64,000 bases of DNA from Dendrobates tinctorius (Eukaryota): assembly GCF_039654945.1 (NCBI RefSeq), contig NW_027361770.1:24676001-24740000 (forward strand). The letters are read 5' to 3'. The notes beneath the pieces were generated by a model. The model was not told the origin of the DNA, searched no databases, and saw nothing but the letters and a program-made list of their open reading frames with translations. The position numbers and the translations under genes were made by a program. Below, in pieces: positions 3,460 to 58,497 of this stretch (positions are counted from its first letter, which is position 1; each line of letters starts with the position of its first letter).

Positions 3460-5530
3460 GAGGCAGTTGCTTTTTTTAGTGTGAAAAAATTAAATATATT
3501 GTGATCCATCCGTGCTTTGTGGTACATTTTGGTGTTATATAACTCTCCCAAAAAGTGTTGAAAATTTTTTTATATTATTAAATAAGTCACCATTAGAGTA
3601 TTCTGTGCTCTGGGGTACATTTTTGTTAAATATAGAACTCCAAAAAAGAGTTAAAATGTTGCTGTGATATATAACACTCCAAAAAAGCATTAACATTTTC
3701 TGCTGGCTTAATTTACTCATTCATACAGTATTCCATGCTCTGGTGTACATTTATGTGATAAATAACACTCCAAAAAAGCGTTACTTTTTTGTTGTAGTCA
3801 CTTACTCATCCATAGAATACTACGTGCTGTTGGTTAGATTTCTGTGATACATAACACTCCAAAAAAGCATTAATTTTTTTTCTGTATTCAATTAATCATC
3901 CACACAGTGTAAGATGCTTAGTAGGCAACACAAAGATGTCAGAATTATGCAAGACTCCTGAGTGAGTGACTGAAAGAATATTGCAGCCACAGGAAGCTGG
4001 TGCAAAAACCAGAGATGACAGGAGCCCTTGGTCCAGATACATTCGCTTTCCTGGAACTACAAGTTGAGAAACCCAGGCTGCAGCCTTCACTGGGGTTCTT
4101 GCAGATTGCGGACAGGGGAGCCAGGAACTGGTGAGCGGGCTGCAGGGCTTAGGCTGGGCAGAAGAGACAAGGAGGTGAGCCAGGACTAGGTGTAGAGAAA
4201 TGCTATCAGGTGAACTAGCTGCAAGGTACCCGACAGTTGGCAGCGTAGAAGGGGGTTTATTGAAGAGTTTGGTACCAATCATCACATTTTGTTCATCCAT
4301 CAGGCAGTGGAGGCTGAACACTTGCCTTGAAGGCTGCAAGAGCTCACAGCTGGAATCAGGGACACAGTCCTCAAAATGGAGGGGCAACATCTCTGGTATG
4401 CGGTGTGTGAGATCTCAGAAAGAAGGGAGCAGGATAAACACTTCTTGAGGACTGAATATGCCTGGGAGAGGCTCCTCGATGCCACATGAGATGGGGGTAC
4501 TGCCACCCCCAAGAGATCGTAATGTCTTAGGGATTCCCCACCTCCTTTGCAGGAGTAGGAGATGGTACAGGTAAAACAGGGAGCTGTCATTAATTTCTAA
4601 ATGATGGGGGCTCTGACACTGCCAGAAGCTGGGTCACATATAGCCCAGAAACCTTGGAATCGGGCTCCAGGAAACAGGTGTAGGTAGTCTCCTCAGCCTT
4701 TCGAGGAAGGACAAGAAGAAGAGGATGCCAGGTTTACCATATTACTTTTATTTTAATTTTTTTTCCTAGCTTTGTACTTTGTGTAAAGTTTTTATGAATG
4801 TAGCAGTACAGCAACTACAGTTTAACAAAAATTTGAATGAGGCCTACCAGTTGTTGCCTTTCAGGGGTATATGGATGACCATCCTTATAATTTTGTTCTT
4901 GATTTGTACTTTCTGCAAAGCCTTTGTAAGTGTAGTAGTAATGCAACTACACTTTAAAAATATTTAAATGAGGCCCGACAGTTGTTGCCTTTCAGGGGAT
5001 TACCATCCTTATAATTTTTTGTTAGCTTTTCATTCTCTGTAAAGCCTTCATGAGTGTAGAAGTACATCAACTACACTTTCAAAATATTTAAGTTAAATAG
5101 ATTTTTATGGATCTTCAAAAAAATTGTTCAAAAATATTTTGGTATTTTATTGCTCCTCCATAGAGTATTGCATATTCTGGGGTACATTTGGTGGTTCATA
5201 ACCCTCAAAAAAGTGTTGAAAAATATTCAGTAATATATTGCTCATCCATAAAGTATTACATGCTCTGGGGTACATTTTACTGGTATATAACCCTTCGAAA
5301 AATTATTCAAACATTTTTATTGATTCAGTTAGTCATCTGTAGAATAATAGGTATTTTCTGTAACATTTCTATGATATATTACACTCCAAAAAATCATTGA
5401 GAAATTTTTCTGTATTCAGTTAATCATTCATAGAATATTATGGCCTCTGTGGTATGCAACTCTCTTAAAAGGCATTGAAACTTTTATTTGGATTCAATTG
5501 CTCATTTATTGAGTATTACGTTGCCTTCTG
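3460..5530. mobile_element. Old repeat block paralogous to 14740-15560, probably part of a hAT relic
   Basis: 3850-4160 aligns by eye with 14741-15080 (e.g. CCCAGGCTGCAGCCTTCAC, GAATCGGGCTCCAGG vs GAATTGGGCTCCAGG). The second block runs toward a hAT transposase fragment at 16358. Confidence 0.45.
3480..3900 (+). repeat. Degenerate ~80-90 bp tandem repeat (ATAACACTCCAAAAAAG motif)
   Basis: Motif recurs at about 3540, 3635, 3675, 3765 and 3855, and again in 5190-5470 and near 14745. Confidence 0.65.
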
Positions 5531-6468
5531 CTACATTTCTTTGATAAACAAATTCAGCAGACAGAAGGGTATCATTATTCATATAGAAAATGACATATCA
5601 GACATATAAAATCATATATTGATACCCCAAATGATGGACAAATATATGGACTGATCGCAATATAACATGAAAACCACAACCACAAGAAAAGAAATGATCA
5701 TCAAGTCCAAAGTACTCCAAATATATCAATTTTTATTTAATTAACCCCTTCACGACCTTTGACGCCACGTAGGCGTCATGAAAAGTCGTGTCAGAACGAC
5801 CCATGACGCCTATGTGGCGTCATGACTTTAAAGCCCCCCTGCGGGTCGGGTGACCTAGGTCACTGAAAGGTCACCCGACCCGCAGATACAGGGGGCTTTG
5901 TTCTTCGCCACAGGGGGCGTGGCTTCGCCCCCACGTGGCTACGATCGCTCTGATTGGCTGTTATAAGTGAAACAGCCAATCAGAGCGATAGTAATATTTC
6001 ATCAATTAAAATTGATGAAATATTACAATCCAGCCATGGCCGATGCTGCTGTAGCATCGGACATGGCTGGAGACACCGATTCCACCCTCCCCACCGGCGA
6101 TCGCCCCCCCGCAACTGAATGACAGCGGCGATCTGCCGCCGCTGTCATCATCTGCCCCCCTCCCATTCCCTCTGCTCCCCGCCAGCCTCCGATCCCCCCC
6201 TCACCCCCTCTCACCTCCCCCGGCACCTTCTAAGTCCCCCTGTCGCTCCCGGTGTCCGGCGGGTCCGGTTCATGGGCGCCGCCATCTTAGAAAATGGCGG
6301 GCGCATGCGCAGTGCGCCCGCCCGAATCTGCCGGCTGCAGATTCCATTCTTTCATTTTGATCACTCTCACAGTGATCAAAATGAAAGAAAAAGTAAATAA
6401 ACCCCCCGATTATCACCCCCATAGGTAGGCAGAACTAATAAAATAAAGAAAATATTTTTATTTTTCCA

Positions 6469-6860
6469 TTAGGGTTAGGGTTAGGGTTGAAAAGAGGGTT
6501 AGGGTTAGGGTTGAAAAGAGGGTTAGGGTTAGGGTTGAAAAGAGGGTTAGGGTTAGGGTTGGAAAGAGGGATAGGGTTAGGGTTGGAAAGAGGGTTAGGG
6601 TTAGGGTTGGAAAGAGGGCTAGGGTTGGAAAGAGGGTTAGGGTTGGAAAGAGGGTTAGGGTTGGAAAGAGGGTTAGGGTTAGGATTGGAAAGAGGGTTAG
6701 GGTTGGACTTAGGGTTAGGGTTGGAATTAGGGTTAGAATTAGGGTTAGGGTTGGAATTAGGGTTAGCGTTGGAATTAGGGTTAGGCTTGTGGTTAGGGAT
6801 GTGTTAGGGTTAGGGCTGTGGTTAGGGGTGTGTTGGGGTTAGGGTTGGAGTTAGAATTGA
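6469..6860 (+). repeat. Telomere-like (TTAGGG)n tract with GGGTTGGAAAGA / GGGTTGGAATTA variants
   Basis: Directly visible, inside the TTAA element. Confidence 0.95.
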
Positions 6861-6861
6861 G

Positions 6862-9800
6862 GGGTTTCCACTGTTTAGGCACATCAGGGGGTCGCCAAAC
6901 GCGACATGGTGCAACCATTGATTCCAGCCAATTTTGCGTTCAAAAAGTCAAACGGTGCTCCCTCCCTTCCAAGCCCTGACGTGTGCCCAAACACTGGTTT
7001 ACCCCAACATTTGAGGTATCAGCGTACTCAGGAAAAATTGCACAACAACTTTTGGGGACTAATTTCTCGTGTTACCCTTGGGAAAATAAAAAATTGGGGC
7101 TAAAAAATTATTTTTGTGGAAAAAAATGATTTTTTCATTTTCACGTCTCTGCATTATAAACTTCTGTGAAGCACTTGGGGGGTTCAAAGTGCTCACAACA
7201 CATCTTACATACGTTCCTTGGAAGGTCTAGTTTCCAAAATGGGGTCACTTGTGGGGGGTTTCCACTGTTTAGGCACATCAGGGGCTCTGCAAACGTAATG
7301 ACGACCGCAGACTATTCCATCAAAGTCTGCATTTCAAAACGTCACTACTTCCATTCCGAGCCTTGACGTGTGCCCAAACAATGGTTCCTCCCCACATATG
7401 GGGTACCAGCGTACTCAGGACAAACTGGACAACAACTTTTGGGGTCCAATTTCTCCTGTTACCCTTGTGAAAATAAAAAATTGCGGGCTAAAAAATCATT
7501 TTTTGAGAAAAAAAAAGATTTTTTATTTTCACGGTTCTGCGTTATATACTTCTGTGAAGCACTTGGGGGTTCAAAGTGCTGCTCACCACACATCTAGATA
7601 AGTTCCTTGGTGGTCTAGTTTCCAAAATGGGGTCACTTGTGGGGGTTTCCACTGTTTAGGCACATCAGAGGCTCTGCAAACGTAACATGATGCCCGCAGA
7701 CCATTCGATCAAGTCGGTATTTCAAAACGTCACTACTTCCCTTCCGAGCCCCGACGTGTGCCCAAACAATGGTCCCTCCCCACATATGGGGTATCAGCAT
7801 ACTCAGGACAAACTGGACAACAACTTTTGGGGTCCAATTTCTCCTGTTACCCTTGTGAAAATAAAAAATTGCGAGCTAAAAATTCATTTTTTGAGGAAAA
7901 AAAAAGATTTTTTATTTTCATGGCTCTGCGTTACAATCTTCTGTGAAGCACTTCGGGGTTCAAGGTGCTCACCACACATCTAGATAAGTTCCTTGGGGGG
8001 TCTAGTTTCCAAAATGGGGTCACTTGTTGGGGGTTTCCACAGTTTAGGTACATCAAGGGCTCTGCAAATGTAACATGATGCCCGCAGACCATTCCATCAA
8101 AGTCTGCATACCAAAACGTCACTACTTCCCTTCCGAGCCCTGACGTGTGCCCATACAGTGGTCATCCCCCACATATGGGGTATCAGCGTACTCAGGACAA
8201 ACTGGACAACAACTTTTGGGGTCCAATTTCTCCTGTTACCCTTGTGAAAAAAAAATTGCGTGCTAAAATTCATTTTTTTTGAGGGAAAAAAAATGATTTT
8301 TTATTTTCACGGCTCTGCATTATAAACTTCTGTGAAGCACTTGGGGGTTCAAGGTGCTCACCACACATCTAGATAAGTTCCTTGGGGGGTCTAGTTTCCA
8401 AAATGGGGTCACTTGTGGGGGGTTTCTACTGTTTAGGCACACAGGGGCTCAGCAAATGTAACATGACGCCCGCAGACCATTCCATCAAAGTCAGCATTTC
8501 AAAATGTCACTACTTCCCTGCTGAGCCCCAGCGTGTGCCCAAACAGTGGTTCCCCCCCAGATATGGGGTACGAGCGTACTCAGGACAAACTGGACAACAA
8601 CTTTTGGGGTCCAATTTATCCTAGTACTCTTGTGAAAATAAAAAATTGCCAACTAAAAAATTTTTTTTTAGGAAAAAAAAAGATTTTTTATTTTCACTGC
8701 TCTGCATTATAAACTTCTGTGAATCACCTGGGGGTTCAAAGTGCTCACTATGCATCTAGATAAGTTCCTTAGGGGGTCTAGTTTCCAAAATGGGGTCATT
8801 TGTGGGGGAGCTCCAAAGTTAAGGCACACAGGGGCTCTCCAAACACGACATGGTGTCTGCTAACGATTGGAGCCAATTTTCATTTCAAAAAGTCAAATGG
8901 CGCTCATTCCCTTCTGCGCCCTGCCGTGCACCCAAACAGTGCCCCCCCCCACATATGGGGTACCAGCATACTCAGGACAAACTGGACAACAACTTTTGTG
9001 GTCCAATTTCTCCTGTTACCCTTGTGAAAATAAAAAATAGCGTGCTAAAAAATCATTTTTGAGGAAAAAAAATGATTTTTTATTTTCACTGCTCTATGTT
9101 ATAAACTTTTGTGAAGCACTTGGGGGTTCAAAGTGATCACTACACATCTAGATAAGTTCCTTAAGGGGTCGAGTTTCCAAAATGGTGTCACTTGTGGAGG
9201 AGCTCCAATGTTTAGGCACACAGGGGATCTCCAAACGCGACATGGTTTCCGATAACGATTGGAGCTAATTTTCCATTCAAAAAGTCAAATGGCGCTCCTT
9301 CCCTTCCGGGCCCTGCCGTGCACCCAAACAGTGGTTTATGACCACATATGAGGTATCGGTGTACTCAGGAGAAATTGCCCAACAAATTTTAGGATCCATT
9401 TTATCCTGTTGCCCATGTGAAAATGAAAAAACTGAGGCTAAAAGATAATTTTTGTGAAAAAAAGTACTTTTTTTTTTTACGGATCAATTTGAGAAGCACC
9501 TGGGGGTTCAAAGTGATCACTTTGCATCTAGATAAGTTCCTTGGGGGGTCTAGTTTCCAAAATGGGGTCACTTGTGGGGGAGCTCCAGTGTTTAGGCACA
9601 CAGCGACTCTCCAAACGCGACATGGCAAGCGCTAAATATTCCAGCATATTTTCCATTCAAAAAGTCAAATGGCACTCCTTCCTTTCTGAGCCCTGCCGTG
9701 CACCCAAACAGTGTTTTTTTACCACATATGAGGTATCGGTGTAGTCAGGGGAAATTGCCCAACAAATTTTAGGATCCATTTTATCCTGTTGCCCATGTGA

Positions 9801-9990
9801 AAATGAAAAAATTGATGCTGAAAGAAAATTTTTGTTGGAAAAATTAAAATGTCCTTTTTTTCCTTCCATGTTGCTTTAGTTCCTGTGAAACACCTAAAGG
9901 GTTAATAATCTTCTTGAATGTAGTTTTGAGTAGCTTGAGGGGTGCAGTTTTTAGAATGGTGTCACTTTTGGGTATTTTCTGCCATATAGA
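6862..9990 (+). repeat. Tandem array of about eight ~388 bp units
   Basis: Anchor TTTCCAAAATGG at 7231, 7619, 8006, 8395, 8782, 9174 and 9554, with a degenerate copy near 9948. Confidence 0.92.
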
Positions 9991-10824
9991 CCCCTCAAAG
10001 TGACTTCAAATGTGAGGTGGTCCCTAAAAAAAATGGTTTTGTAAATTTTGTTGTAAAAATGAGAAATCACTGGTCAACTTTTAACCCTTATAACTTACTA
10101 ATAAAAAAATATTTTGCTTCCAAAATTGTGCTGATGTAAAGTAGACATGTGGGAAATGTTATTTAGTAACTATTTTGTGTCACATAACTCTCTAGTTTAA
10201 CAGAATAAAAATTCAAAATTTGAAAATTGCGAAATTTTCAAAATTTTCGCCAAATTTCTGATTTTTTCACAAATAAACGCAAAAATTATCGATCTAAATT
10301 TACCACTAACATGAAGCCCAATATATCACGAAAAAACAATCTCAGAATCGCTAGGATGCGTTGAAGCGTTCCAGAGTTATTACCTCATAAAGGGACACTG
10401 GTCAGAATTGCAAAAAATGGCCAGGTCATTAAGGTCAAAATAGGCTGGGTCATGAAGGGGTTAATTACAAATATAGCAGCAAGTCTAGGGTGGTACAAAC
10501 CAAAGTGCTATGTGCAGTTAAAGGAAAAACCAAACAAACGGGACACAGGTGTGCTGTCTGAATAGTACAGAAAATATATCTAGTATTGTTATATATAGGA
10601 GGTAACAAGACCCCACTAGGATTAGTATAATATGTATCCAGATTCCCTCAAGAATATTAACATAAAGATCCTATTTATAAAACCCTGGCAGCAATCATTA
10701 TAACATGATTCCATATAGTATAAACCAGAATGGAGCCATATAGCTCCCAGTACATACCAAATAACGATCACCAGGCTGCTAGGGAAGTAGTAACAAGAAG
10801 GAATGGAGACAACCACACACCAGC

Positions 10825-11661: not shown

Positions 11662-13274
<1,613 letters not shown>

Positions 13275-22914: not shown

Positions 22915-24519
22915 CAGTGGGGAAAAAAAGTATTTAGTCAGTCAGCAATAGTGCAAGTTCCACCACTTAAAAAGATGAGAGGAGTCTGTAATTTACATCA
23001 TAGGTAGACCTCAACTATGGGAGACAAACTGAGAAAAAAAAATCCAGAAAATCACATTGTCTGTTTTTTTTTTTCATTTTATTTGCATATTATGGTGGAA
23101 AATAAGTATTTGGTCAGAAACAAAATTTCATCTCAATACTTTGTGATATATCCTTTGTTGGCAATGACAGAGGTCAAACGTTTTCTGTAAGTCTTCACAA
23201 GGTTGCCACACACTGTTGTTGGTATGTTGGCCCATTCCTCCATGCAGATCTCCTCTAGAGCAGTGATGTTTTTGGCTTTTCGCTTGGCAACACGGACTTT
23301 CAACTCCCTCCAAAGGTTTTCTATAGGGTTGAGATCTGGAGACTGGCTAGGCCACTCCAGGACCTTGAAATGCTTCTTACGAAGCCACTCCTTCGTTGCC
23401 CTGGCGGTGTGCTTTGGATCATTGTCATGTTGAAAGACCCAGCCACGTTTCATCTTCAATGCCCTTGCTGATGGAAGGAGGTTTGCACTCAAAATCTCAC
23501 GATACATGGCCCCATTCATTCTTTCATGTACCCGGATCAGTCGTCCTGGCCCCTTTGCAGAGAAACAGCCCCAAAGCATGATGTTTCCACCACCATGCTT
23601 TACAGTAGGTATGGTGTTTGATGGATGCAACTCAGTATTCTTTTTCCTCCAAACACGACAAGTTGTGTTTCTACCAAACAGTTCCAGTTTGGTTTCATCA
23701 GACCATAGGACATTCTCCCAAAACTCCTCTGGATCATCCAAATGCTCTCTAGCAAACTTCAGACGGGCCCGGACATGTACAGGCTTAAGCAGTGGGACAC
23801 GTCTGGCACTGCAGGATCTGAGTCCATGGTGGCGTAGTGTGTTACTTATGGTAGGCCTTGTTACATTGGTCCCAGCTCTCTGCATTCATTCACTAGGTTC
23901 CCCCGCGTGGTTCTGGGATTTTTGCTCACCGTTCTTGTGATCATTCTGACCCCACGGGGTGGGATTTTGCGTGGAGCACCAGATCGAGGGAGATTATCAG
24001 TGGTCTTGTATGTCTTCCATTTTCTAATTATTGCTCCCACAGTTGATTTCTTCACTCCAAGCTGGTTGGCTATTGCAAATTCAGTCTTCCCAGCCTGGTG
24101 CAGGGCTACAATTTTGTTTCTGGTGTCCTTTGACAGCTCTTTGGTCTTCACCATAGTGGAGTTTGGAGTCAGACTGTTTGAGGGTGTGCACAGGTGTCTT
24201 TTTATACTGATAACAAGTTTAAACAGGTGCCATTATTACAGGTAATGAGTGGAGGAAAAAGGAGACTCTTAAAGAAGTTACAGGTCTGTGAGAGCCAGAA
24301 ATCTTGATTGCTTGTTTCTGACCAAATACTTATTTTCCACCATAATATGCAAATAAAATGAAAAAAAAAACAGACAATGTGATTTTCTGGATTTTTTTTT
24401 CTCAGTTTGTCTCCCATAGTTGAGGTCTACCTATGATGTAAATTACAGACGCCTCTCATCTTTTTAAGTGGTGGAACTTGCACTATTGCTGACTGACTAA
24501 ATACTTTTTTTCCCCACTG
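22915..24519 (-). mobile_element. Tc1-like transposon (family B), young full-length copy
   Basis: TA TSD; ~200 bp nearly identical TIRs starting CAGTGGGGAAAAAAAGTATTTAG. Confidence 0.96.
23133..24154 (-). pseudogene. Tc1 DD34E transposase with a single frameshift near 23885
   Basis: ORF 23861..24154 (HTH region) and ORF 23133..23885 ([26 protein letters not shown]). Confidence 0.93.
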
Positions 24520-30799: not shown

Positions 30800-33541
30800 A
30801 CCTCCCCCTTGAGGAGGGGTCACCGAACCCTCAACCACGCCACCAGGGCGATCAGGGTGAGCCCGATGAAATGCACGCACCAATCTTTTGGCATGAATAT
30901 CAGAGGCAGAGACCCAGGAATTATCCTCCTGACATAACCCTTCCACTTAACTAAATACTGGAGTCTCCGTCTAGCCAGACGGGAAACCAGTATTTTCTCT
31001 ACCTCATATTCCATGTTACCTTCAACCAATACTGGGTCTGGAGGTGCCACCCCAGGAACAACTGGTTCAACAAACCTCTTCAACAAGGACTTATGGAACA
31101 CATTATGGATTTTAAATGTGACAGGAAGAGCCAAATGAAAAGAGACCGGATTAATAATCTCCAAAATCTTGTAAGGTCCAATAAATCTAAGCTTAAACTT
31201 AGGACAAACCACCTTCATAGCAATATTTTTTGATGATAACCACACCATATCACCAATCTTAAACTGGGGACCAATGGTCCTATGTCGATTGGAAAACCGC
31301 TGGGCCTTTTCCTGCGAGAGAGATAACTTATCCACCACTTGATCCCAGATCTGGTGCATTCTCTCCACCACAGTGTCAACACCTGGGCAGGCAGAATGCT
31401 CCACCTGCCCTGAAGAAAATCGAGGATGAAACCCAAAGTTACAAAAAAAAGGTGACATCAAAGTGGCAGAACTAGCTCTATTATTTAAAGTAAATTCGGC
31501 CAAGGGCAAAAATGAAACCCAATCATCCTGATCAGCAGAAATAAAACATCTCAAATACGACTCCAAGGTCTGGTTTGTTCTCTCTGTCTGCCCATTAGTC
31601 TGAGGGTGAAAAGCAGAGGAGAAGGACAACTGAATTCCCAGCTTGGAACAGAAAGTCCTCCAAAATCTAGACACAAACTGAACTCCTCTGTCAGATACAA
31701 TGTTCTCAGGAATCCCGTGTAAGCGAACCACCTGTTGCAAAAACAGGGGCACCAACTCAGAGGAAGATGGCAACTTAGGGAGTGGTACAAGATGAACCAT
31801 CTTAGAGAACCTATCACAAATCACCCAAATAACAGTCATTCTTTGAGAGACCGGCATATCAGAGATGAAATCCATTGAAATATGGGTCCATGGCCTCCTG
31901 GGGACCGGCAAAGGCATCAACAACCCACTAGAGCGAGAACAAGATTTAGACCGGGAGCAAGTCCCACAGGACTGCACAAAATTCCTGACATCATGAGACA
32001 AGGTGGGCCACCAAAAAGAGCGACTCACCAGATCTCTAGTACCAAAAATACCTGGATGACCAGCCAATGCAGAGCAATGAACTTCAGACATCACTCTCTT
32101 CTTCCACTGGTCAGGAACATACAACTTTCCACTGGGACAATGCTCAGGTTTGTCCTCCTGGAACACTTGCAGAGCAAGTCTCAAATCGGGTGAGATGGCA
32201 GAAAGAGCTACCCCTTCGCCTAAGATGGTAGCAGGCTTGGTCACCACAGGAGAATCAGCAAAGAAACTCCTAGAGAGGGCATCTGCCTTGACATTCTTAG
32301 TTCCAGGAAGAAAAGAGACCACAAAATCTAAACGTGTAAAAAACAAGGCCCACCTAGCCTGTCTATGGTTTAAGCGTTTAGCTGACTCTAGGTAAATCAA
32401 ATTCTTGTGGTCAGTGAGGACCACAACTTGATGTTTAGCTCCCTCCAACCAATGTCTCCACTCCTCAAATGCCCATTTCATGGCCAACAGTTCCCGATTC
32501 CCCACATCATAGTTACGTTCAGATGGAGAGAACTTTCGGGAAAAGAAAGCACAGGGATTCATTTTAGATGTTACAGGATCCTTTTGGGACAAAACAGCTC
32601 CTGCACTAATCTCAGAAGCATCCACCTCTACCTGGAACGGGAGTGAGACATCAGGTTGCTGCAAAACCGGGGCAGAGGTAAATCTTCGCTTCAGCTCCTG
32701 AAAGGAAGCAACAGCCTCAGGAGACCAATCCAACACATCAGCACCCTTCTTAGTCAGATCAGTCAATGGCTTGGCAATACTAGAAAATTTTGCTATAAAT
32801 TTCCGATAAAAATTAGCAAAACCCAAAAACTTCTGGAGGGCCTTCAAAGAAGTGGGCTGAACCCAATCATAAATGGCCTGTACCTTGGCCGGGTCCATTT
32901 CAATAGTTGACGGAGACAAAATAAATCCCAAAAATGAAATCCTCTGTACTCCAAAAAGGCATTTCGATCCTTTGACATACAGGGAATTCTCCCTCAAGAT
33001 CCGGAACACAGTCCGAATATGTTCCACATGAGAATCCCAATCCTTGGAGAAGATCAAAATATCATCCAGATAGATAATCAAAAATTTATCGACAAAGTCC
33101 CGGAAAATATCGTTCATGAAGCACTGGAAGACAGAAGGGGCATTAGTGAGCCCAAAAGGCATCACCAGGTACTCAAAATGTCCCTCCGGAGTATTAAACG
33201 CGTCTTCCATTCATCCCCCTGCTTAATGCGGATAAGATTATACGCCCCCCTGAGGTCAAGCTTGGTAAACCAGCAAGCACCTCTAACTCTAGAAAATAGA
33301 TCCGAAATCAGGGGTAACGGATACTGATATTTAATAGTAATTTTATTGAGGGCACGATAATCAATACAAGGCCTTAAAGAACCATCCTTTTTGGCCACAA
33401 AAAAAACCCCAGCACCTAAGGGTGAAGAGGATGGTCTAATATGACCCTTCTCCAACGCCTCCTTAATATAGGACCGCATAGCCTCGTGCTCGGGTACAGA
33501 TAAATTGAAGAGCCGACCCTTGGGAAATTTACACCCTGGGC
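30800..33541 (-). pseudogene. pol: Pol: RT, RNase H, integrase, chromodomain (frameshifted)
   Basis: [60 protein letters not shown]. Frame breaks near 33550, 33200 and 30930. Confidence 0.93.
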
Positions 33542-34831
33542 TTAGTTCAATTGCACATAACTCCTATGAGGAGGCAAGGACGCAGACTCATTCTCACTAA
33601 ATACATCATAAAAGTCCGCCAAATAGTCAGGAACATCATGCGACTGAGGAGAGGTGGAAAAAACCGGAGCCTCACTAAAGGCACACCGACAACCCCAACT
33701 CACCACAGACACAGATTTACAATCCAAAACTGGATTATGAATTTGCAACCAGGGAAACCCCAGAACAACGGCATCATGCAGACCATGCAATACCAAAAAT
33801 CTGCAATTTTCTTGATGGTCTGGGGCGACCCGCATGACCACCTGGGTCCAAAACTGAGGTTTATTTTTAGCCAAAAGAGTAGCATCAATCCCCCTCAAAG
33901 GGATAGGCGTCTGCAGAGGTGTCATCGGAAATCCACAAAGTTTAGCAAAATCCAAGTCCATTAGGTTTAGCGCTGCTCCTGAATCCACAAAAGCCTTGGC
34001 GGAAAATGTGGACAGGGAGCAGATCAGAGTAATTGCCAGAAGAAACTTAGGTTGAACACCACCAACAGAAAACGTGTGTGCAAAGCGTTTCTCTCGTTTA
34101 GGACAAACAGAAATAATATGCGAGGCATCTCCACAGAAAAAACACAGCTTATTACACATTCTGAACTCCTGACGTTGCGCCTTAGACAAAACTCTATCAC
34201 ATTGCATAGGTTCGGACGTCTGTTCAACCGGTGGCAACACCTCTCGTGCAATCCTGCGTTCACGTAAACGCCGATCAACCTGAATGGCTAATGACATAAA
34301 ATCGTCCAGACCAGAGGGAACAGGAAATCCCACCATAGTATCTTTTACGGCTTCTGACAAACCCTTCCGAAAGAGAGCAGCCAAGGCATTATCATTCCAG
34401 GTAGTAAGGACCGCCCACTTTCGGAACTTTTGACAGTACAACTCTGCAGAATCTCGACCCTGGTTCAATGCCAACAGGGTCTTTTCAGCCTGATCAATAG
34501 CATTAGGTTCGTCATACAACAACCCCAAAGCTTGAAAGAATGCGTTCACATTAGTCAGAATAGGATCATCTGGTTTCAAAGAAAAAGCCCAATCCTGGGG
34601 ATCGCCACGCAGCAAAGAGATGACAATTTTAACCTGCTGCGCGGAGCTCCCTGACGAGTTAGGCTTCAAGGCAAAAAATAATTTACAATTATTTTTGAAA
34701 CTCAAAAATTTAGATTGATCCCCAAAAAATACATCAGGAGTAGGGATCTTTGGTTCAACAGCATGCAAACGAGCAAGGTAGGCGGAAATTCCCCACACTT
34801 CCGCAGCGAGCTGCTCCACATGATCAGACAA
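33542..34831 (-). CDS. gag: Gag (retrotransposon capsid, CCHC zinc knuckle) plus aspartic protease
   Basis: [14 protein letters not shown] knuckle; AFVDSGA protease motif; frameshift at the end into pol. Confidence 0.88.
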
Positions 34832-36585: not shown

Positions 36586-37964
36586 TGACAGTGGCATTTA
36601 ACATGTTAACAGCCGCGGGTGAATCACGATTTCACCAGTAGCTGTTCCAGGCACATGTCAGCTGTACAGATCAGCTGTCATGTGCCGGAAAAGGTGCGGG
36701 CTCATCACCGGAGCCCACACCAAACAGGGGGTGGTGTTCAATGATGGACTGTGTCCATCACTGGATGTTAAGGGGTTAAAAAACATGTAAAATAATTAAC
36801 TACATATTCAAATAATAATAAGAAACACATTAAACTCACATAACACCAAATCCCCGATGTGCTTGTCATCTATAAATATGTAAAATAAAAAACAACATAT
36901 ACTCACCTTAAAGCCCAATCCCCAATGCCCAAAAAACACCATATACTCTCCTGTCTGCCATAGTCCACGTAATCCCAAGTGTCCCATGGCGATCTCATGT
37001 GTAAAAAAGTCAAATTGCGAGATGTGACTGCTCTAACCAGCCACCAGCGATACCCTGACAGGAGCGTCATTGCTCCCACAGTGTACATCGCTGAGCTGCT
37101 GTGAGAGAGGTAAACCAAGAGGAGAGGGCGCATCACCATATGTAGTAAAAAAAAGATGCAAATGTAATAATGGGGTGCAATACCTAGTATGGATAATATC
37201 CATGAACTGGAGAGGAGAAAGACCAACCAAAAAAATGGTGTGCACATCCACATAATGACTAAAAATAGAAATCTTTATTTAGACACCTGAGACACAGCAA
37301 ACATTTAAACAACTTTAAAAACATGTGTTAAAGAACATGACAAATAAACCACACCCCTGAAGGTGGAATAATGAGGGACATAATAAACAATGAACCAGAT
37401 GGACCAAGCAATGAGAAGCACATATGCTATAAATAAGCCGCAAAATATCCACAATATAAGATGCAAAGCAAGACATACACATTCACAAATGGAGCATTAT
37501 GAAGATTAGAAAACATGTAAACAACAAGTATAATGACAAGTATAATGAACAGACTGAAACATCATGTTCCCAATAATATTAAACCCCAAATTGCAGCACA
37601 TTCTGTGGGCATATATGAGATGTAATGGTGACAGTGGATTTAAATCCAGACCACAAGGTGTGTGTATCTCTCCAGGTCTGAAGGCCTGGTTAGATGTAGA
37701 TGGTAAGAAATACCCAAACTATATGATGTATACAACCTGTGGTGTATAATCTGAGGGTGCAGCAGAATGCAAAGAGAATGGTAGCTTTCTGCATAGTGAT
37801 GCTGCGGCAACCTGGTCAGTTCAAGAGAGGCTCATGTATAGAGCCAAAATAAGTATAAAGTCCCAGTGAGAAAGGGGTGTGGGGAAAGCCCCACACATAT
37901 CGCTGTTGCAAGCAGCTTTGTCAGGGGAGTTGTCAGAGGTGCCAGTGTCAGAGCATAAATAGGT

Positions 37965-40101: not shown

Positions 40102-42832
40102 ATGGGCAACAAACAAGGAGAATTGGAACTACTAACACAGGAACAGAAATATGATGTAATTGGAATCACTGAAACTTGGTGGGACAATACACATGATTGG
40201 AATACAAGACTAGAAGGATACAACTTATTTGCAAGAAACAGACTTGATAAACGAGGAGGGGGTGTCGCATTGTATGTTCGAAACGCGTATATCTGCACAG
40301 AGATTGAAGCTTCAGAGACTGGGAGTTCTGTGGAAACTGTTTGGGTAAGAATACAAGGACAGAACAATGGAAAGGACACCATTGTAGGCATTTACTACAG
40401 GCCGCCTGTGCAAGCCGAAGATATAGATGAACTCTTTATGCATCAGATGGCCAAGTTCTCCAAAAAATATGACATAGTTGTCATGGGAGATTTCAACTAT
40501 CCAGACATTTGTTGGGAATCTCTCTCAGGCAAAACTAACAGGTCAAGGAAATTCTTATCCTCTCTTGCTGACAACTTTATCTTCCAAAAGGTAAGGGAGA
40601 AAACAAGGGGAACTGCTACCTTGGATCTAATCCTTATAAACAAGGAGGAAATGGTTGAGGAGGTAAAAGTGGCTGGGACCCTAGGAGGTAGCGACCATGC
40701 TATTTTAGAATTTTGGATTACTAGAGGTGGAAGACCTGTGAAGACTCAGACGTCAAGGTTAGATTTCAGAAAGGCAGATTTTAAGGGATTCAGAAAGAGA
40801 ATTGGAGGGATCCAATGGCTGGATATCCTTAAAGACAAAAATGTCCAGGAAGGATGGGAAATCTTGAAAAATGAAATTCTCAAAGCACAGTTGTTAACAA
40901 TTCCGAAAAGAGGGAAGAATAGGAAGCATTTAAGGAAACCAGGATGGATGAACACAGAACTTAAGCACATGCTAAAAAGGAAGAAAAAAATGTTTATAAA
41001 ATGGAAAGAGGGAGGCATATCTAAAGAAGAATATAATGCTGTCTGCAGAACCTGCAGGGCACAAATCAGATTAGCTAAAGCTGAAAATGAACTGAGGCTT
41101 GCAAGAGATGTCAAAAGCAATAATAAAGGATTTTGGGGATATGTCAAAAGTAAAAGAAAAGTCAAAGATGCTATAGGATTTTTACAGGATGAAAATGATG
41201 AAATGGTAAGACAGGATGTTGAGAAGGCTGAACTTTTAAATTCCTATTTTGCATCTGTTTTCTCTCAGAAAGGAAATGCAACATCAACTGTTATTCACTG
41301 TCCTATTAAGGGAATAGAAGAATCCAGGATATCTATAAACAGAAAGATAGTGAGGAAACACTTAGCTAACCTAAATGAATTCAAGTCTCCAGGTCCAGAT
41401 GAATTACACCCCAGAGTACTGAAGGAGATAGCAGAAGAAATTTTTGAACCCCTCTCCATAATCTTTGAAAATTCTTGGAGAACAGGAGAAGTGCCAGAAG
41501 ACTGGAGAAGAGCAAATGTTGTTCCTATCTTCAAAAAGGGGAAGAAGGTGGACCCAGGCAACTATAGGCCGGTGAGTCTGACTTCTATACCAGGAAAGAT
41601 CTTTGAACAAATTATTAAACAACATGTATGTCAATACCTGGATAAGAATGAAGTGATTAAACAGAGTCAGCATGGGTTTCTAACTAATAAGTCATGTCAG
41701 ACTAACTTAATTTCCTTCTATGACGGTATCACTGATTGGGTGGATCAAGGAAATGCTGTAGATATAGTATATCTTGACTTCAGCAAAGCATTTGACAAAG
41801 TCTCTCATACAATCCTTATTGAAAAAATGACTAAGTATGGAATGGACAAGGCAACTGTTAGGTGGATTCATAACTGGCTTAGTGATCGGACCCAAAGAGT
41901 GGTCGTAAATGGCTGCACATCCAGTTGGAAGAATGTCTCAAGTGGGGTACCACAGGGCTCTGTCCTGGGCCCTGTATTGTTCAACATCTTTATCAACGAT
42001 TTAGATGAAGGAATTGAGGGTAAACTGATTAAATTTGCTGATGACACAAAGCTAGGAGGGATAGCTAATACTAGAGAAGAGAGAGAGGATTCAAAAAGAT
42101 TTAAATAAACTGGAGAAGTGGGCAGCAACTAACAGAATGGTTTTTAACAGGGAGAAATGCAAAGTACTACATCTGGGCAATAAAAATGAAAAAAGCATAT
42201 ATAGAATGGGAGGAATAGGGCTAAGTGACAGCACATGTGAAAAAGACTTGGGTATACTAATAGATCACAGACTGAATATGAGTCAATAGTGTGATGCAGC
42301 AGCAAAAAAGGCAAATGCAATTCTAGGATGTATTAACAGAAGCATACAGTCTAGATCACGTGAAGTCATTATTTCCCTCTACTCCTCTTTGGTCAGACCT
42401 CATCTGGAATATTGTGTCCAGTTTTGGGCACCACATTTTAAAAAAGACATCAACAAACTGGAGCAAGTTCAGAAAAGAGCGACCAGAATGGTGACCGGTC
42501 TGCAAACCCTGTCTTATGAGGAAAGGTTGCAGGATTTGGGAATGTTTAGTTTGCAAAAGAGAAGACTGAGAGGAGACCTAATAGCTGTCTACAAATATCT
42601 AAAGGGCTGTCACATTGTAGAAGGATCAACTTTATTCTCATTTGCACAAGGAAAGACTAGAAGCAATGGGATGAAACTGAATGGGAAGAGACACAGATTA
42701 GATATTAGAAAAAACTTTTTGACAGTTAGAGTGATCAATGAGTGGAACAGGCTGCCACGAGAAGTGGTGAGTTCTCCTTCAATGGAAGTCTTCAAACAGA
42801 GGCTGGACAGACATCTGACTGGGATGATTTAG
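40102..42832 (+). pseudogene. CR1 ORF2 (endonuclease + reverse transcriptase)
   Basis: [32 protein letters not shown] and FADD motifs; frameshift near 42090 and a stop near 42287. Confidence 0.93.
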
Positions 42833-46299: not shown

Positions 46300-46330
<31 letters not shown>

Positions 46331-47159
46331 AAGAAAGAAAGACACATAAATAAAAAACTGTGTACAGTAAAATCTCAGCAGGACCCTACAGGATAGGGAT
46401 AGAATAGATGGATTCCACAGAGTACGTAAACATAGAATAGATACTTTTACAGATGTCAGTGACATATGTAATCAGCTTACTGTACATGTACTTAATTATT
46501 AAAAGATTATTTTTCTGAAATAGATGGCGTAAGCTACCTCCTAATCTTCTTAATCAGCAGATGGAAAGTCGTCGACTAGGGGCACATATTTATAGTCTGG
46601 GAAGGGGGTAATATACCCATGGAGCTTCGCAGGCTATTAATATCAACTCACAGCTGATTGTATAAACACACACACCCAGAATAAATGACACAGACTCCTT
46701 TAACCCCTTCATGACCAAGCCTATTTTGACCTTAATGACCAGGCCATTTTTTGCAATTATGACCAGTGTCCCTTTATGAGGTAATAACTCAGGAACACTT
46801 CAATGGATCCTAGCGATTCTGAGATTGTTTTTTCGTGACATATTGGGCTTCATGTTAGTGGTAAATTTAGGTTGATAATTTTTGCGTTTATTTGTCAAAA
46901 AATCAGAAATTTGGTGAAAATTTAGAAAATTTTGCAATTTTCAAATTTTGAATTTTTATTCTGTTAAACCAGAGAGTTATGTGACACAAAATAGTTAATA
47001 ATTAACATTTCCCATATGTCTACTTTACATCAACACAATTTTGGAAACAAAATATTTTTTTGTTAGGAAGTTATAAGGGTTAAAAGTTGACCAGCGATTT
47101 CTCATTTTTACAATAAAATTTACAAAACCATTTTTTTAGGGACCACCTCACATTTGAAG

Positions 47160-50100
47160 TCACTTTGAGGGGTCTATATGGCAGAAAATACCCAAAAGTT
47201 ACACCATTCTAAAAACTGCACCCCTCAAGCTACTCAAAACTACATTCAAGAAGATTATTAACCCTTCAGGTGTTTCACAGGAACTAAAGCAATGTGGAAA
47301 GAAAAAATGGACATTTTAATTTTTCCAACAAAAATTTTCTTTTAGCATCAATTTTTTCATTTTCACATGGGAAACAGGATAAAATGGATGCTAAAATTTG
47401 TTGGGCAATTTCTCCGGAGTACAACGATACCTCATATGTAGTCATAAACCACTGTTTGGGTGCATGGCACGGCTCAGAAGGGAAGGAGCCCCTTTTGACT
47501 TTTTGAATGGAAAATATGCTGGAATATTTAGCGGTTGCCATGTCGTGTTTGGAGAGCCCCTGTGTGCATAAACATTGGAGCTCCTCCACAAGTGACCCCA
47601 TTTTGGAAACTAGACCCCCCAAGGAACTTATCTAGATGCATAGTGATCACTTTGAACCCCCAGGTACTTCACAAATTGATCTGTAAAAAAAACAAAACAC
47701 TTTTTTTTCACAAAAATTTTCTTTTAGCCTCAGTTTTTTCATTTTCACATGGGCAACAGGATAAAATGGATCCTAAAATTTGTTGAGCAATTTCTCCTGA
47801 GTGCACAGATACCTCATATGTGGTCATAAACCACTGTTTGGGTGCACGGCATGGCCCGGAAGGCAAGGAGCACCATTTGACTTTTTGAATGGAAAATTAG
47901 CTCCAATCGTTATCGGACACCATGTCGCATTTGGAGAGCCCCTGTGCACCTAAACATTGGAGCTCCCCCACAAGTGACCCCATTTTGGAAACTAGACCCC
48001 CTAAGGAACTTATCTAGATGTGTAGGGAGCACTTTGAACCCCCAAGTGCTTCACAAAAGTTTATAACACAGAGCAGTGAAAATAAAAAATAATTTTTTTT
48101 CCTCAAAAATGATTTTTAGCACACTATTTTTAATTTTCACAAGGCTAACAGGAGAAATTGGACCACAAATCTTGTTGTCCAGTTTGTCCTGAGTACGCTG
48201 GTACCCCATATGTGGGGGGGAACCACTGTTTGGGCACACGGCAGGGCTCAGAAGGGAAGGAGCGCCATTTGACTTTTTAAAATGCAAATTACTTCCAATC
48301 GTTAGCGGACACCATGTTGTGTTTGGAGAGCCACTGTGTGCCTAAACATTGGAGCTCCCCCACAAATGACCCCATTTTGGAAACTAGACCCCCTAAGGAA
48401 CTTATCTAGATGTGTAGTGAGCACCTTGAACCCTCAAGTGCTTCACAATAGTTTATGACGCAGAGCCGTGAAAATAAAAAAAAAATTTTTTCCCTCAAAA
48501 AATTATTTTTTAGTGCGCAATTTTTTATTTTCACAAGGGTACCAGGATAAATTAGATGCCAAAATTTGTTGTCCAGTTTGTCCTGAGTACGCTCGTACCC
48601 CACATGTGGGGGGGAACCACTGTTTGGGCACACGTTGGGGCTCGGAAGGGAAGTAGTGACATTTTGAAATGCTGACTTTGATGGAATAGTCTGCGGGTGT
48701 CATGTTACATTTGCAGAGCCCCTGATGTACCTAAACTGTGGAACCCCCCCACAAGTGACCCAATTTTGGAGACTAGACCCCCCAAGGAACTTATCTATAT
48801 GTGTGGTGAGCACCTTGAACCCCCAAGCGCTTCACAGAAGTTTATAACGCAGAGCCGTGAAAATAAAAAATATTTTTTTTTCCACAAAAAAAAAATGATT
48901 TTTAGCCAGCAATTTTTTTTTCACAGGGGTAGCAGGATAAATTGGCCCCAAAAGTTGTTGTCCAGTTTGTTCTGAGTACGCTGATACCTCATATGTGGGT
49001 GGGGACCACTGTTTGGGTACACGTCGGGGCTCGGAAGGGAAGTAGTGACATTATGAAATGCTGACTTTGATGGAATGGTCTGCGGGCATCATGTTACATT
49101 TGCAGAACCCCTGATGTACCTAAACTGTGGAACCCCCCACAAGTGACCCCATTTTGGAAACTAGACCCCCCAAGGAACTTATCTAGATGTGTGGTGAGCA
49201 CCTTGAACCCCCAAGTGCTTCACAGAAGTTTATAACGCAGAGCCGTGAAAATAAAAAATATTTTTTTTTCCTAAAAAAAAATGATTTTTAGCTAGCAATT
49301 TTTTTTTTCACAAGGGTAGCAGGATAAATTGGACCCCAAAAGTTGTTGTCCAGTTTGTCCTGAGTACGCTGATACCCCATATGTGGGGGATGACCACTGT
49401 TTGGGTACACGTCGGGGCTCGGAAGGGAAGTAGTGACATTATGAAATGCTGACTTTGATGGAATGGTCTGCGGGCATCATGTTACATTTGCAGAACCCCT
49501 GATGTACCTAAACTGTGGAACCCCCCCACAAGTGACCCCATTTTGGAAACTAGACCCCCTAAGGAACTTATCTAGATGTGTGGTAAGCACCTTGAACCCC
49601 CAAGTGCTTCACAGAAGTTTAGAACGCAGAGACGTGAAAATAAAAAATATTTTTTTTTCCTCAAAAAAAATGATTTTTAGCCAGCAATTTTTTTTTTCAC
49701 AAGGGTAGCAGGATAAATTGGACCCCAAAAGTTGTTGTACAGTTTGTCCTGAGTACGCTGGTGCCCCATATATGGGGGGGAACTATTGTTTGGGCACACG
49801 TAAGGGCTCGAAATGGAAGTAGTGGCGTTTTGAAATGCAGACTTTGATGGAATGGTCTGCGGTCGTCATTACGTTTGCAGAGCCCCTGATGTGCCTAAAC
49901 AATAGAAACCCCCCACAAGTGACCCCATTTTGGAAACTAGACCTCCCAAGTAACTTATCTAGATGCCTGGTGAGCACTTTGGACCCCCAAGTGCTTCACA
50001 GAAGTTTATAACGCAGAGACGTGAAAATTATAAAAAAAAATTTTTCCACAAAAATATTTTTTTAGCCCCCAAATTTTTATTTTCCCAAGGGTACCAGGAG

Positions 50101-50305
50101 AAATTAGACCCCCAAAGTTGTTGTGCAATTTTTCCTGAGTACGCTGATACCCCATATGTTGGGGTAAACCACTGTTTGGGCACACGTCGGGGCTTGGAAG
50201 GGAGGAAGCACCGTTTAACTTTTTGAATGCAAAATTGGCTGGAATCAATGGTTGCACCATGTCGCGTTTGGTGACCCGCTGATGTGCCTAAACAGTGGAA
50301 ACCCC
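47160..50305 (-). repeat. Tandem array of about eight ~388 bp units
   Basis: Anchor TTTTGGA(A/G)ACTAGACC near 47601, 47983, 48376, 48764, 49152, 49541 and 49928, with a degenerate copy near 47207. Confidence 0.92.
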
Positions 50306-50310
50306 TCAAT

Positions 50311-50816
50311 TCTAACTCCAGCCCTAACCCCAACACACCCCTAACCACAGCCCTAACCCCAACACATCCCTAACCCTAATTCCAACCCTAACCATAACCC
50401 TAACCCCAACAGACCCCGAACCCTAATCCCAACCCTAGCCATAACCCTAACCACAAGCCTAACCCTAATTCCAGCCCTAACCCTAATTCCAACCCTAACC
50501 CTAATTCCAACCCTAACCCTCTTTCCAACCCTAACCCTCTTTCCAACCCTAACCCTTTCCAACCCTAACCCTTTCCAACCCTAACCCCCTTTCCAACCCT
50601 AACCCTTTCCAACCCTAACCCTCTTTCCAACCCTAACCCTCTTTCCAACCCTAACCCTCTTTCCAATCCTAACCCTAACCCTCTTTCCAACCCTAACCCT
50701 CTTTCCAACCCTAACCCTCTTTTCAACCCTAACCCTCTTTTCAACCCTAACCCTAACCCTCTTTTCAACCCTAACCCTAACCCTAACCCTCTTTTCAACC
50801 CTAACCCTAACCCTAA
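50311..50816 (-). repeat. Telomere-like (CCCTAA)n tract with variants
   Basis: Directly visible, inside copy 2. Confidence 0.95.
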
Positions 50817-52484
50817 TGGAAAAAAAAAAAAAAAAATATTATCTTTATTTTATTAGTTCTGCCTACCTATGGGGGTGATAATCGGGGGGTTTATTTAATT
50901 TTTCTTTCATTTTGATCACTGTGAGAGTGATCAAAATGAAAGAATGGAATCTGCAGCAGGCAGATTCGGGCGGGCGCACTGCGCATGCGCCCGCCATTTT
51001 CAAAGATGGCGGCGCCCATCATCCGGACCCGAGGGACACCGGGAGGGACGGGGGGACACCGGAGGTACCGGGGGGGTGAGGGGGGGATCGGAGGCTGGCG
51101 GGGAGCAGAGGGAATGGGAGGGGGGCAGATGATGACAGCGGCGGCAGATCACCGCTGTCATTCAGTTGCGGGGGGGCGATCGCCAGTGGGGGGGGTGGAA
51201 TCGGTGTCTCCAGCCATGTCCGATGCTACAGCAGCATCGGACATGGCTGGATTGTAATATTTCATCAATTTTCATTGATGAAATATTACTATCGCTCTGA
51301 TTGGCTGTTTCACTTTTAACAGCCAATCAGAGCGATCGTAGCCACGTGGGGGCGAAGGCACACCCCCTGTGGTGAATTACAAAGCCCCCTGTATCTGCGG
51401 GTCGGGTGACCTTTCAGTGACCCCGGTCACCCGACCCGCAGGGGGGCTTTGAAGTCATGACGCCACATAGGCGTCACTGGTCAGATTTGAACCAGGTTTC
51501 ATGACGCCTATGTGGCGTCATTGGTCGTGAAGGGGTTAATAAATCTTAATGAAACCAAACTTACTGCATCACCCATTCCAGTGATGCAGTTATCCCCTGC
51601 AAGAAAATTAAAATAAAAAAGAGCAATGAACTCACTTCACCTAACTGACATCAGCAAGAGTGCCATCGAAAATTTCAGCGGCAATTATGCTGACATCAGT
51701 TAGATGAAGTAAGTTCATTGGCTGTGAACTCCCAGGGTCTTTCTGATGGAACTTTATCATGCTCACAGTGATGTCAGACAGGTTATAGGAGTTCACTGCG
51801 AGACACTAAGAAGTGGTAACAGACACTGCTCAGTGTCTCTGCTGGATGTCAGGTTGTATGGTCGCATCATGCAAGCATGCAGTCTGCCATCTAGATGTAG
51901 CAGAGCTAGACCGATCCTGGAACAATTGGATTATCATTTTCTCAGTGGACAGGTGAGGAATACTGTTGTTTGTTATTTTAATTATCTTGCAGGGGACAAT
52001 GCTGTCACTGGAATGGGCGATGTAGTAGGTATGGTTTCATTAAGATTTATTAAAGGAGTCTGTGTCATTCTTTCAATTAAAGGACTTTATTATGGATGTG
52101 TGTGTTTTTATACAATATGACTATGGAGTTAGTAATGGGGGTGTCTTATGGATGCCTCACCTCTGGGCTTGATGTCACCTGACAATACAAAGGTGACATC
52201 AACCCCCACAACTATTACCACACTTGCTACCACATCAGGGCAAGTGGAAGAGCAAGGCTAAGTGCCAGAATTGGCACATCTTTTCTGAGGCAGCTGACAG
52301 TTGATGTTTTTAGCCTGGGAAGGGCAATATCCATGGCCCCTTCCTAGGTTATTTATTCTAGCTCACATTTGTCTGGACAGCCTTAGCTGGTTATTAATTA
52401 TAGGAGCAGCATACATCATTTTTGGGGGGTCCCCTTTTAACAGCCAGTAAAGGCTAAGTATACAGCTATGAGCTGATATTAATT

Positions 52485-52627
52485 GCCTGGGAAGCTCCAT
52501 GGGTATTACCCGCTTACCAGCCTGGGAAGCTCCATGGGTATTACATGGGTATTACCCGCTTACCAGCCTGGGAAGCTCCATGGGTATTACCCGCTTACCA
52601 GCCTGGGAAGCTCCATGGGTATTACCC
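52485..52627 (+). repeat. 35 bp minisatellite, about 4 copies
   Basis: GCCTGGGAAGCTCCATGGGTATTACCCGCTTACCA repeated. Confidence 0.9.
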
Positions 52628-53904
52628 ATTTTCCAGGCTATAAACATCTACCCCCAGCCATCGGCTTTTCTCCAGATGGTTAAGAAAATTACGTAGGAGC
52701 CCACGCCATTTTTTTCCAAAAAATTAATCTTTGAATAATTAAATACATATTCTGTAAGCTGCACACACTGTACTAATTGTATTTGCCACTGACATCTATA
52801 TATCTATCTATTCTATGGGTATATACTGTATGTAATCAATCTATTCTATTCTGTCGGATCCTGCTGTGATTTTACTGAACAGTGTTGCGGAATTGCTGGC
52901 TTTTTATCTATCTTTCTAGCTATCTATTATCTATCTATTATATACTTTACTACTACTTTATCTACTTTAAAATAGTTTAATCGCAGCACAATTATTTTCC
53001 TGCACTCTTACCGAATTTTACCAACTTTTTCCAATTTTAAGAAAAAATGCTCATGTTTCAGATCACGAATCCGAATGTGCCATATTCATTGGGAATTTAT
53101 GTTTGGCAATTGTATTCCAAACATATTTGCTCATCTCTAATCACAATATTACATGAAGCAACTTACACGTTATTATAAGCTCATAGCATCACACCTGTTA
53201 GCCTTAGAATGTTGAAGAGACATTTATGTGCACAAATATATACATGATAATAATTTAAAATTGTATTATGAATTAATTGCAGAATAGACTGTAAGATGAT
53301 TGATAAAAATCTTTGAACATTCTAAAGGGGTTGTCTTGTTTTCATTAAAGGGAAAAATTGTAAACTTTGCAATTTGCCTCTTTAAAAAAATCTCCTCATT
53401 CTCAATAATGGAAAGATCTTTAACTTAATTGTGTACCTCTAATTGATTAGGTTACCCACCACCCTACAGAATGGTTGCTTACCAGGAAGAGAGGAGCAGG
53501 AGCAGCGCTTGCAGGGTCTTTGTTTTAGAGCCTGAAAGTGCTGCTCTGAAGCTGACCAGCCTCAATGTCCTTATGCTTCTCCCATGCTTTAGATTTAAAG
53601 CTACCTCTGCTGGTAAAATAGGAGTTTGCTGGTTTTCACTGTCATTCTATGGTAAAACATTGTCCCCCAACAAACAGGAACACAGGAGGCAGGGGCGCAG
53701 TGCACTCCTAAAGAAAGAAGATGAGAAAAAACTTTTAAATACCTTTTTGCTGAGATATACATTTTACAGTGAAGCCTGGTTAAACTGAAAGGCTGATCTC
53801 AGTTGATTTACCTGTAATAACAGTTTCAAAAGAGCATTTCTTACTTAGAGTCATTTTTTCTCTCTCCAGAGTCACTCTCTCTTCTGTAGTGTATAAGCTC
53901 TTAA

Positions 53905-58473: not shown

Positions 58474-58497
58474 GGACGGGGGGAGGGTATTCTTTTT

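Follow-up and report, generated by a model that had tools for sequence, protein, structure and literature searches.

A large non-coding TTAA transposon, very probably of piggyBac type, with inherited telomere-like and satellite modules in Dendrobates tinctorius

Results and discussion

In a 64,000-nucleotide stretch of the genome of the dyeing poison frog Dendrobates tinctorius (assembly GCF_039654945.1, contig NW_027361770.1, positions 24,676,001 to 24,740,000 of the forward strand; hereafter "the window"), we analyzed a non-coding element which is present in two full copies. Copy A is located at positions 5745-10460 of the window (plus strand, 4,716 bp) and copy B at 46704-51535 (minus strand, 4,832 bp). 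The element is very probably a large non-autonomous cut-and-paste DNA transposon of the piggyBac type, which carries its repeat modules as inherited cargo. A preliminary description of the window had proposed two independent insertions with TTAA flanks and 13-bp ends, a module order common to both full copies and the absence of open reading frames (ORFs). All of these proposals were confirmed.

Element boundaries and target site

Extraction of the junctions revealed that both copies read TTAA, CCCCTTCACGACC, the body of the element, GGTCATGAAGGGG and again TTAA. The 13-bp inverted ends are identical in the two copies (left CCCCTTCACGACC, right CCCCTTCATGACC), and the left end matches the right end at 12 of 13 positions. 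In copy A and copy B alike, the left end contains CACGACC and the right end CATGACC. This C/T asymmetry is a family trait, fixed in both copies, and not the decay of a single copy.

The window was scanned for TTAA followed by the 13-bp end, with up to three mismatches tolerated. Six matches were found, compared to 0.33 expected from shuffled sequences. Four of them are the termini of copies A and B, one belongs to a truncated relative at 55301, and one, with three mismatches, to another short element (36763-36779). In a global alignment the two copies are colinear throughout and identical at 4,368 of 4,694 ungapped columns (93.05%). Between their 500-bp flanks, only chance words are shared. 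Since the flanks are unrelated, the copies stem from separate insertion events of the same family rather than from a segmental duplication. The features are as follows (+ and -, strand; ".", no strand; U0 to U7, units of the tandem array):

5741-5744, ".": TTAA target-site duplication left of copy A (junction reading and end scan)
5745-5757, +: left 13-bp terminal inverted repeat of copy A, CCCCTTCACGACC (junction reading and end scan)
5745-6395, +: head of copy A, at least 12 consecutive hairpins, GC 0.58, CpG observed/expected 0.90
5760-5778, +: 19-bp palindrome TGACGCC-N5-GGCGTCA, 2 bp inside the left end
5804-5822, +: second copy of the 19-bp palindrome, 25 bp further in, forming a hairpin with a 21-bp stem together with the first
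6396-6468, +: AT-rich linker with three AATAAA motifs
6469-6860, +: TTAGGG-derived minisatellite, G-rich strand on the plus strand of the element, 28 perfect TTAGGG units
6861-9946, +: tandem array of ~388-bp units, consisting of a partial U0 (6861-7229) and U1-U7
7230, 7618, 8005, 8394, 8781, 9173 and 9553, +: starts of U1-U7 in copy A (phase anchors)
9947-10460, +: 3' arm, which opens with a strongly diverged unit-like piece and closes with TGACC-type subterminal repeats and the right end
10448-10460, +: right 13-bp end of copy A (junction reading)
10461-10464, ".": TTAA target-site duplication right of copy A (junction reading and end scan)
46700-46703 and 51536-51539: TTAA target-site duplications of copy B
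50896-51535 (head), 50306-50816 (tract) and 46704-50305 (array and arm), -: modules of copy B, in the same order as in copy A
51969-52069, -: paralogous empty site of copy B, with a single TTAA at 52050-52053
55301-56117, -: truncated relative of a sister subfamily, TTAA at 55301-55304, end CCCCTTCACTACC

Empty site of copy B

For identification of unoccupied target sites, the flanks of each copy were rejoined around one TTAA and searched against the window. The rejoined site of copy B (46684-46703 plus 51540-51620) aligns with 52069-51969 of the opposite strand, 92 of 102 positions being identical. In a three-way alignment this paralog reads GACTCCT-TTAA-TAAATCTTAATG across the junction with no interruption, while the same two flanks in copy B each carry a TTAA, beside the CCCC and GGGG ends of the element. 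The empty paralog is direct evidence of the TTAA duplication and of the exact element ends, for which no other genome is needed. Transposition at TTAA, as originally suggested, is thus borne out within the window itself. Copy B was thus inserted into one of the two arms of a pre-existing local inverted duplication, the second arm of which still has the target unoccupied. The same search of the window with the rejoined flanks of copy A found no empty-site paralog.

The local inverted duplication around copy B comprises 46300-46703 and 51536-51620 on one side and 51969-52938 (minus strand) on the other, with an identity of 90% close to the junction that falls to 74% with distance. A short piece framed by splice-site-like signals lies in each arm (~51563-51595, and near 51990-52025 in the paralog) and might represent a small exon or a portion of another repeat.

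Probable assignment to the piggyBac type

Besides the TTAA duplication, the element has inverted repeats of ~13 bp which start with CCC and end with GGG. Its left end consists of the 13-bp end, a 2-bp spacer and the 19-bp palindrome. In piggyBac of the moth Trichoplusia ni, the left end is composed of a 13-bp repeat, a 3-bp spacer and a 19-bp internal repeat; the latter is composed of inverted TGCGT motifs and is the binding site of the cysteine-rich domain of the transposase, and the spacer of the right end is 31 bp long (PMC5861402). By analogy to the moth element, the 19-bp palindrome is a candidate binding site for this domain. Its pattern occurs four times in the window, always at the left ends of copies A and B, with 0.62 matches expected. 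The earlier piggyBac-like interpretation of the ends therefore stands on the CCC...GGG termini, the 13-bp repeat and the moth-like left layout; termini of the Kolobok type were not found.

The longest ORF of the element encodes 106 amino acids and lies in the repeat tract. Ten ORFs of the element gave no passing match in Pfam, and an ORF of 93 amino acids in the head has no relatives in a word-indexed protein collection. In an Rfam search of the element no model came near its threshold; two microRNA models scored best, on single hairpins and with about one quarter of their gathering scores. The element is thus non-coding, has inverted ends and a TTAA duplication and is abundant, like a miniature inverted-repeat transposable element (MITE), for which the preliminary description had called it unusually large. 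At 4,716 and 4,832 bp the copies are not miniature (hundreds of bp), and the element is better termed a large non-autonomous element.

The hairpin-rich head

The head of copy A contains its hairpins with stems of 8-23 bp. Folded as single-stranded DNA, it reaches -206 kcal/mol compared to -90 +/- 4.6 for shuffled sequences (z = -25); for the head of copy B z is -24. Between the copies, 8 of 352 stem positions differ (2.3%), a count which may be lowered by up to about twofold since the stems were defined on copy A. In the remainder of the head 35 of 275 positions differ (12.7%), in addition to an 11-bp indel (Fisher test, 3e-7), and in the rest of the element 283 of 4,067 (p = 2e-4 against stems). 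No other part of the element is as well conserved as the hairpin stems, and the palindromes thus seem to be maintained, either by selection acting on copies that propagate or through self-templated correction. Both insertions are dead copies, so that their decay since insertion can be no greater than the stem difference of 2.3%. Therefore, most of the 7% difference between A and B lies between source lineages. The apex of the first hairpin (5784-5797) is wholly different in A and B and forms a small hairpin in each. Apex variants of the A type were seen in contigs of other runs, which makes the apex a subfamily difference.

In composition the head resembles a CpG island. The CpG observed/expected ratio is 0.90 in the head of copy A and 0.79 in that of copy B. 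For the window it is 0.41 and for the satellite array and 3' arm 0.25-0.47. CpGs common to both copies are more frequent in the head (37 of 50) than elsewhere in the element (43 of 90; p = 0.004), a retention which is confounded with stem conservation as most head CpGs sit in stems. The heads of both copies have kept exact copies of GCGCATGCGC, GCCGCCATCTT, CAGCCAATCAG (in both orientations) and CACGTG, which we take to be sites for NRF1, YY1 and NF-Y and an E-box, respectively. A spacer of the head (6075-6260) is C-rich on the plus strand, with G-runs on the opposite strand, and the tract 200 bp further on is G-rich on the plus strand. The potential for G-quadruplexes hence changes strand across the GCGCATGCGC/GCCGCCATCTT palindromes.

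Telomere-like tract and satellite array

The tract downstream of the linker is composed of higher-order units of 18 or 24 bp with the fixed spacers TTGAAAAGAGGG or TTGGAAAGAGGG. Perfect TTAGGG units account for 41-43% of it (28 units in 392 bp in copy A, 35 units in 511 bp in copy B). The longest perfect run consists of three units, and the remainder are variant or spacer units. A TTAGGG-based tract is present in both copies, as had been described; a clean telomeric one it is not.

For the array, Tandem Repeats Finder reported a period of 388, 6.9 copies and 86% matches. The phase anchors are spaced by 380-394 bp in both copies and define one partial and seven full units, so that the earlier figure of eight 388-bp units is fair as an approximation.

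In a joint alignment of all units, U0, U1, U5, U6, U7 and the arm of copy A are each closest to the unit at the same position in copy B (92-95%), whereas units within one copy are 67-92% alike. Since the units match by position, the array predates copies A and B and existed in the same order before them. The three internal modules travel as one unit from source copies of the family and were not acquired by each copy separately. The middle units U1-U4 are the youngest (88-92% mutual identity), and U7 beside the arm is the oldest (67% to U1-U4). U7 is also the unit nearest to the truncated relative (75-76%). Judging from these identities, the array had probably expanded before A and B arose, through tandem duplications starting from a founder segment next to the 3' arm. 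As in satellite DNA of the Xmix/Xstir type, which rides on a transposon, an internal segment between inverted ends has been tandemly amplified and was inherited by the copies. Copies A and B derive from two diverged source lineages. Units 2 and 3 of copy B (about 48385-49160) are 97% identical, compared to 92% for their counterparts in copy A, which suggests local conversion or unequal exchange after the split of the lineages.

Abundance in public contigs

Contigs of four public runs, with three organism codes, were placed at 88% likeness on the element and 500 bp of flank on either side. These runs consist of assembled contigs and hence hold no evidence of copy number, strand or transcripts:

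X6, organism code A: 12,332 contig records on the stretch, 1.02 million read
X7, organism code B: 190,203 contig records on the stretch, 18.5 million read
X9, organism code C: 576,490 contig records on the stretch, about 35 million read
X15, organism code A (guessed to be RNA): 2,242 contig records on the stretch, 0.41 million read

Across the four runs, the element accounts for about 0.55-1.7% of all contig records. Contigs cover every bin of the element. In the flanks, X6 and X15 have no contigs in any bin, and X7 and X9 have almost none outside 5245-5435. The family is very abundant and common to at least three organism labels, and this massive coverage of the element, with essentially none on the flanks in all four runs, agrees with the high copy number assumed in the preliminary description. 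Many contigs of X7 and X9 cover the exceptional segment of the left flank of copy A (5245-5435), but none of X6 or X15 do. The segment is apparently a repeat in its own right, either with high abundance restricted to the other organisms or with too much divergence in this one.

In three organisms, the satellite and arm have ~10-20x the summed contig depth of the head; such depth is a poor measure for ranking parts of the element. As a hint only, this head may be missing from most elements that carry the unit and arm. The proposed joint dispersal of telomere-like and satellite DNA is evident for copies A and B, and "joint" may apply to this subfamily only. Some contig joints skip multiples of ~390 bp, which suggests a variable unit number or paralogous alignment.

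Truncated relative and neighbouring elements

The truncated relative, previously placed at 55305-56117, proved to be real. It has a TTAA flank and a 13-bp end with 12 of 13 matches, and it corresponds to U7 and the 3' arm of copy A at 81% identity in reverse orientation, with the first ~40 bp being different. The remaining match of the end scan, TTAACCCCTTAACATCC, opens a different short TTAA-flanked element at 36600-36779 (minus strand), which is apparently cut off after ~170 bp and probably belongs to another piggyBac-like family.

The window is rich in other transposable elements (30820-34831 on the minus strand, 40102-42108, 57457-61396, 12511-13014 and 23133-23885). They include a retrotransposon of the Ty3 type, whose long gag and pol ORFs encode 429 and 796 amino acids, two LINE bodies, one of them after a GDSL-esterase-type ORF, and remnants of Tc1 transposases.

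Proposed movement of the element and alternative explanations

The element would be moved by a piggyBac transposase made elsewhere in the genome. Such an enzyme would recognize the 13-bp ends together with subterminal sites, which are presumably the two 19-bp palindromes at the left end and the TGACC repeats at the right end. We favour a reading in which the first ~140 bp would serve as transposase-binding sites. The transposase would then excise the element and insert it at a TTAA, which is duplicated; the duplication and the ends are directly visible in the window, the enzyme is inferred. More speculatively, the rest of the head, rich in CpG and made up of transcription-factor-like sites, may be a module that maintains access to the left end.

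Several observations weigh against this account. At the right ends, no 19-bp palindrome was found within three mismatches, only TGACC repeats; a palindrome at both ends has been established for a single reference element and is not necessarily diagnostic of the piggyBac superfamily as a whole. The ORFs of the window include no piggyBac transposase, the transposase and retroelement ORFs present being of the Ty3, LINE and Tc1 types. Exact-pattern scans of metagenome contigs with the left and the right end gave no match. The differences between A and B comprise 159 transitions and 167 transversions, and such near-equal numbers are uncommon where DNA decays neutrally in a methylated vertebrate genome. 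The cautions given above for the stem count, the CpG retention and the contig runs have to be added to these points.

A different origin of the element is possible, albeit rather unlikely. A short satellite-bearing TTAA element, consisting of the 3' arm and one unit, might have gained a foreign 5' part, namely a captured CpG-island promoter of the host and a break healed by telomerase, and would move via a left end which was kept or regained. The palindromes would then be a by-product of template switching with no role for the element. The excess of contig depth over satellite and arm, roughly 10-20x by that poor measure, fits such a chimera, as does the fact that the relative has only U7 and the arm in common with the full copies. 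Between A and B, the whole apex of the first hairpin has been exchanged, and a small palindrome is present again. Such a complete exchange is typical of template-switch events. For mammals, the repair of breaks by insertion of telomeric repeats is documented (PMC7215372). However, no internal TTAA or inverted-repeat boundaries are found at the module junctions, and the element is most strongly conserved in its head, which is not required of a passive passenger. As this scenario concerns the origin, it is compatible with the piggyBac-type movement proposed here.

It is doubtful that the head is a working bidirectional CpG-island promoter, with the element as a mobile transcription unit whose rightward transcripts would bear UUAGGG repeats like TERRA. 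The CpG-island metrics, the exact consensus-type sites kept in both copies and the G-rich strand of the tract, which reads away from the head, are in favour of it. On the other hand, three AATAAA motifs stand between head and tract on that strand, and the tract bins are the most under-represented ones in X15, the run guessed to be RNA, relative to X6 (a weak point, as both are contigs). Equally improbable in our view, the head might be retained as a mobile, orientation-independent CpG island with mirrored sites for housekeeping factors, which keeps copies unmethylated, open and mobilisable. If this were true, thousands of promoter-like islands would have been sown across the frog genome, and some of them could make RNA containing telomere repeats.

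Among eukaryotes, TTAA is duplicated by two superfamilies, piggyBac and Kolobok. Membership in the Kolobok superfamily, as a non-autonomous element like the T2-MITEs, which have been highly successful in frogs and include Xmix with its Xstir repeats, is very unlikely. The TTAA target is shared, and a TTAA element of frogs with an amplified internal repeat is a precedent (PMC6004289). However, the ten full-length Kolobok/T2 elements of Xenopus listed in that study all have termini which begin with AG or AGGRR, in contrast to CCCC at both ends here, and the left layout of 13, 2 and 19 bp fits piggyBac.

That A and B arose by segmental (inverted) duplication, as their opposite orientation within 46 kb and the local inverted duplication around copy B might suggest, can be regarded as refuted, since similarity ends exactly at the 13-bp ends with unrelated flanks, the paralog of copy B is empty with one TTAA, and thousands of contigs from other organisms fall on the element and not on the flanks.

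Implications

The element described here provides a vertebrate case at the sequence level, complete with an empty site, of a DNA transposon that scatters telomere-like repeats together with a satellite monomer. Since these repeats are borne by a transposon, internal TTAGGG signals and dispersed satellite signals in frogs need not mark old chromosome fusions. The conserved head with its hairpins and CpGs is a candidate for a cis-acting module which aids the spread of a non-autonomous element. The family makes up ~16% of the window. In the repeat analysis of the dyeing poison frog, 39% of the assembly consists of repeats without an assigned type (PMC11152451), and the family may belong to this fraction.

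Comparison with known systems

The family is not described in the genome paper of the dyeing poison frog or in a survey of anuran transposons; the former does not mention piggyBac, MITEs or satellites, and the latter treats piggyBac as a class only. Telomere-motif-rich repeats which are non-coding and annotated as transposable elements are also known from Arabidopsis (ATREP18; bioRxiv 10.1101/2020.11.28.402172). They are tandem units on the same strand and, according to the authors, "not stricto sensu TEs", in contrast to the frog element with its inverted ends, target duplication and empty site. ATREP18 was therefore rejected as a transposon precedent.

Transposable elements with telomeric repeats were proposed to seed interstitial telomeric sequences (review PMC9693754, citing Bolzan 2017). 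The frog element likewise places TTAGGG-type repeats at internal sites, where they are demonstrably delivered by a transposon. It differs in that the tract is a degenerate minisatellite and neither a clean (TTAGGG)n block nor a relic of a fusion.

Xmix is a T2-MITE of the Kolobok superfamily in Xenopus, in which an internal segment was amplified into the lineage-specific Xstir tandem repeats (cited in PMC6004289). Both are non-coding TTAA-inserting elements of frogs in which a tandemly amplified internal segment was then spread by transposition. Xmix belongs to another superfamily, with AGGRR termini instead of CCCC, and its description in PMC6004289 contains no telomere-like tract or hairpin/CpG head.

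With piggyBac itself (PMC5861402; PMC7351741), the frog element shares the TTAA duplication, the CCC...GGG termini, the 13-bp repeat, the 19-bp left palindrome and the asymmetry of the ends. It differs by its right end without the 19-bp palindrome, its length of 4.7-4.8 kb and its three structured repeat modules, and it is not a deletion derivative of a transposase gene. To these known systems the present analysis adds the empty site within the window, the left end of 13, 2 and 19 bp, the positional orthology of the array units and the conservation of the hairpin stems.

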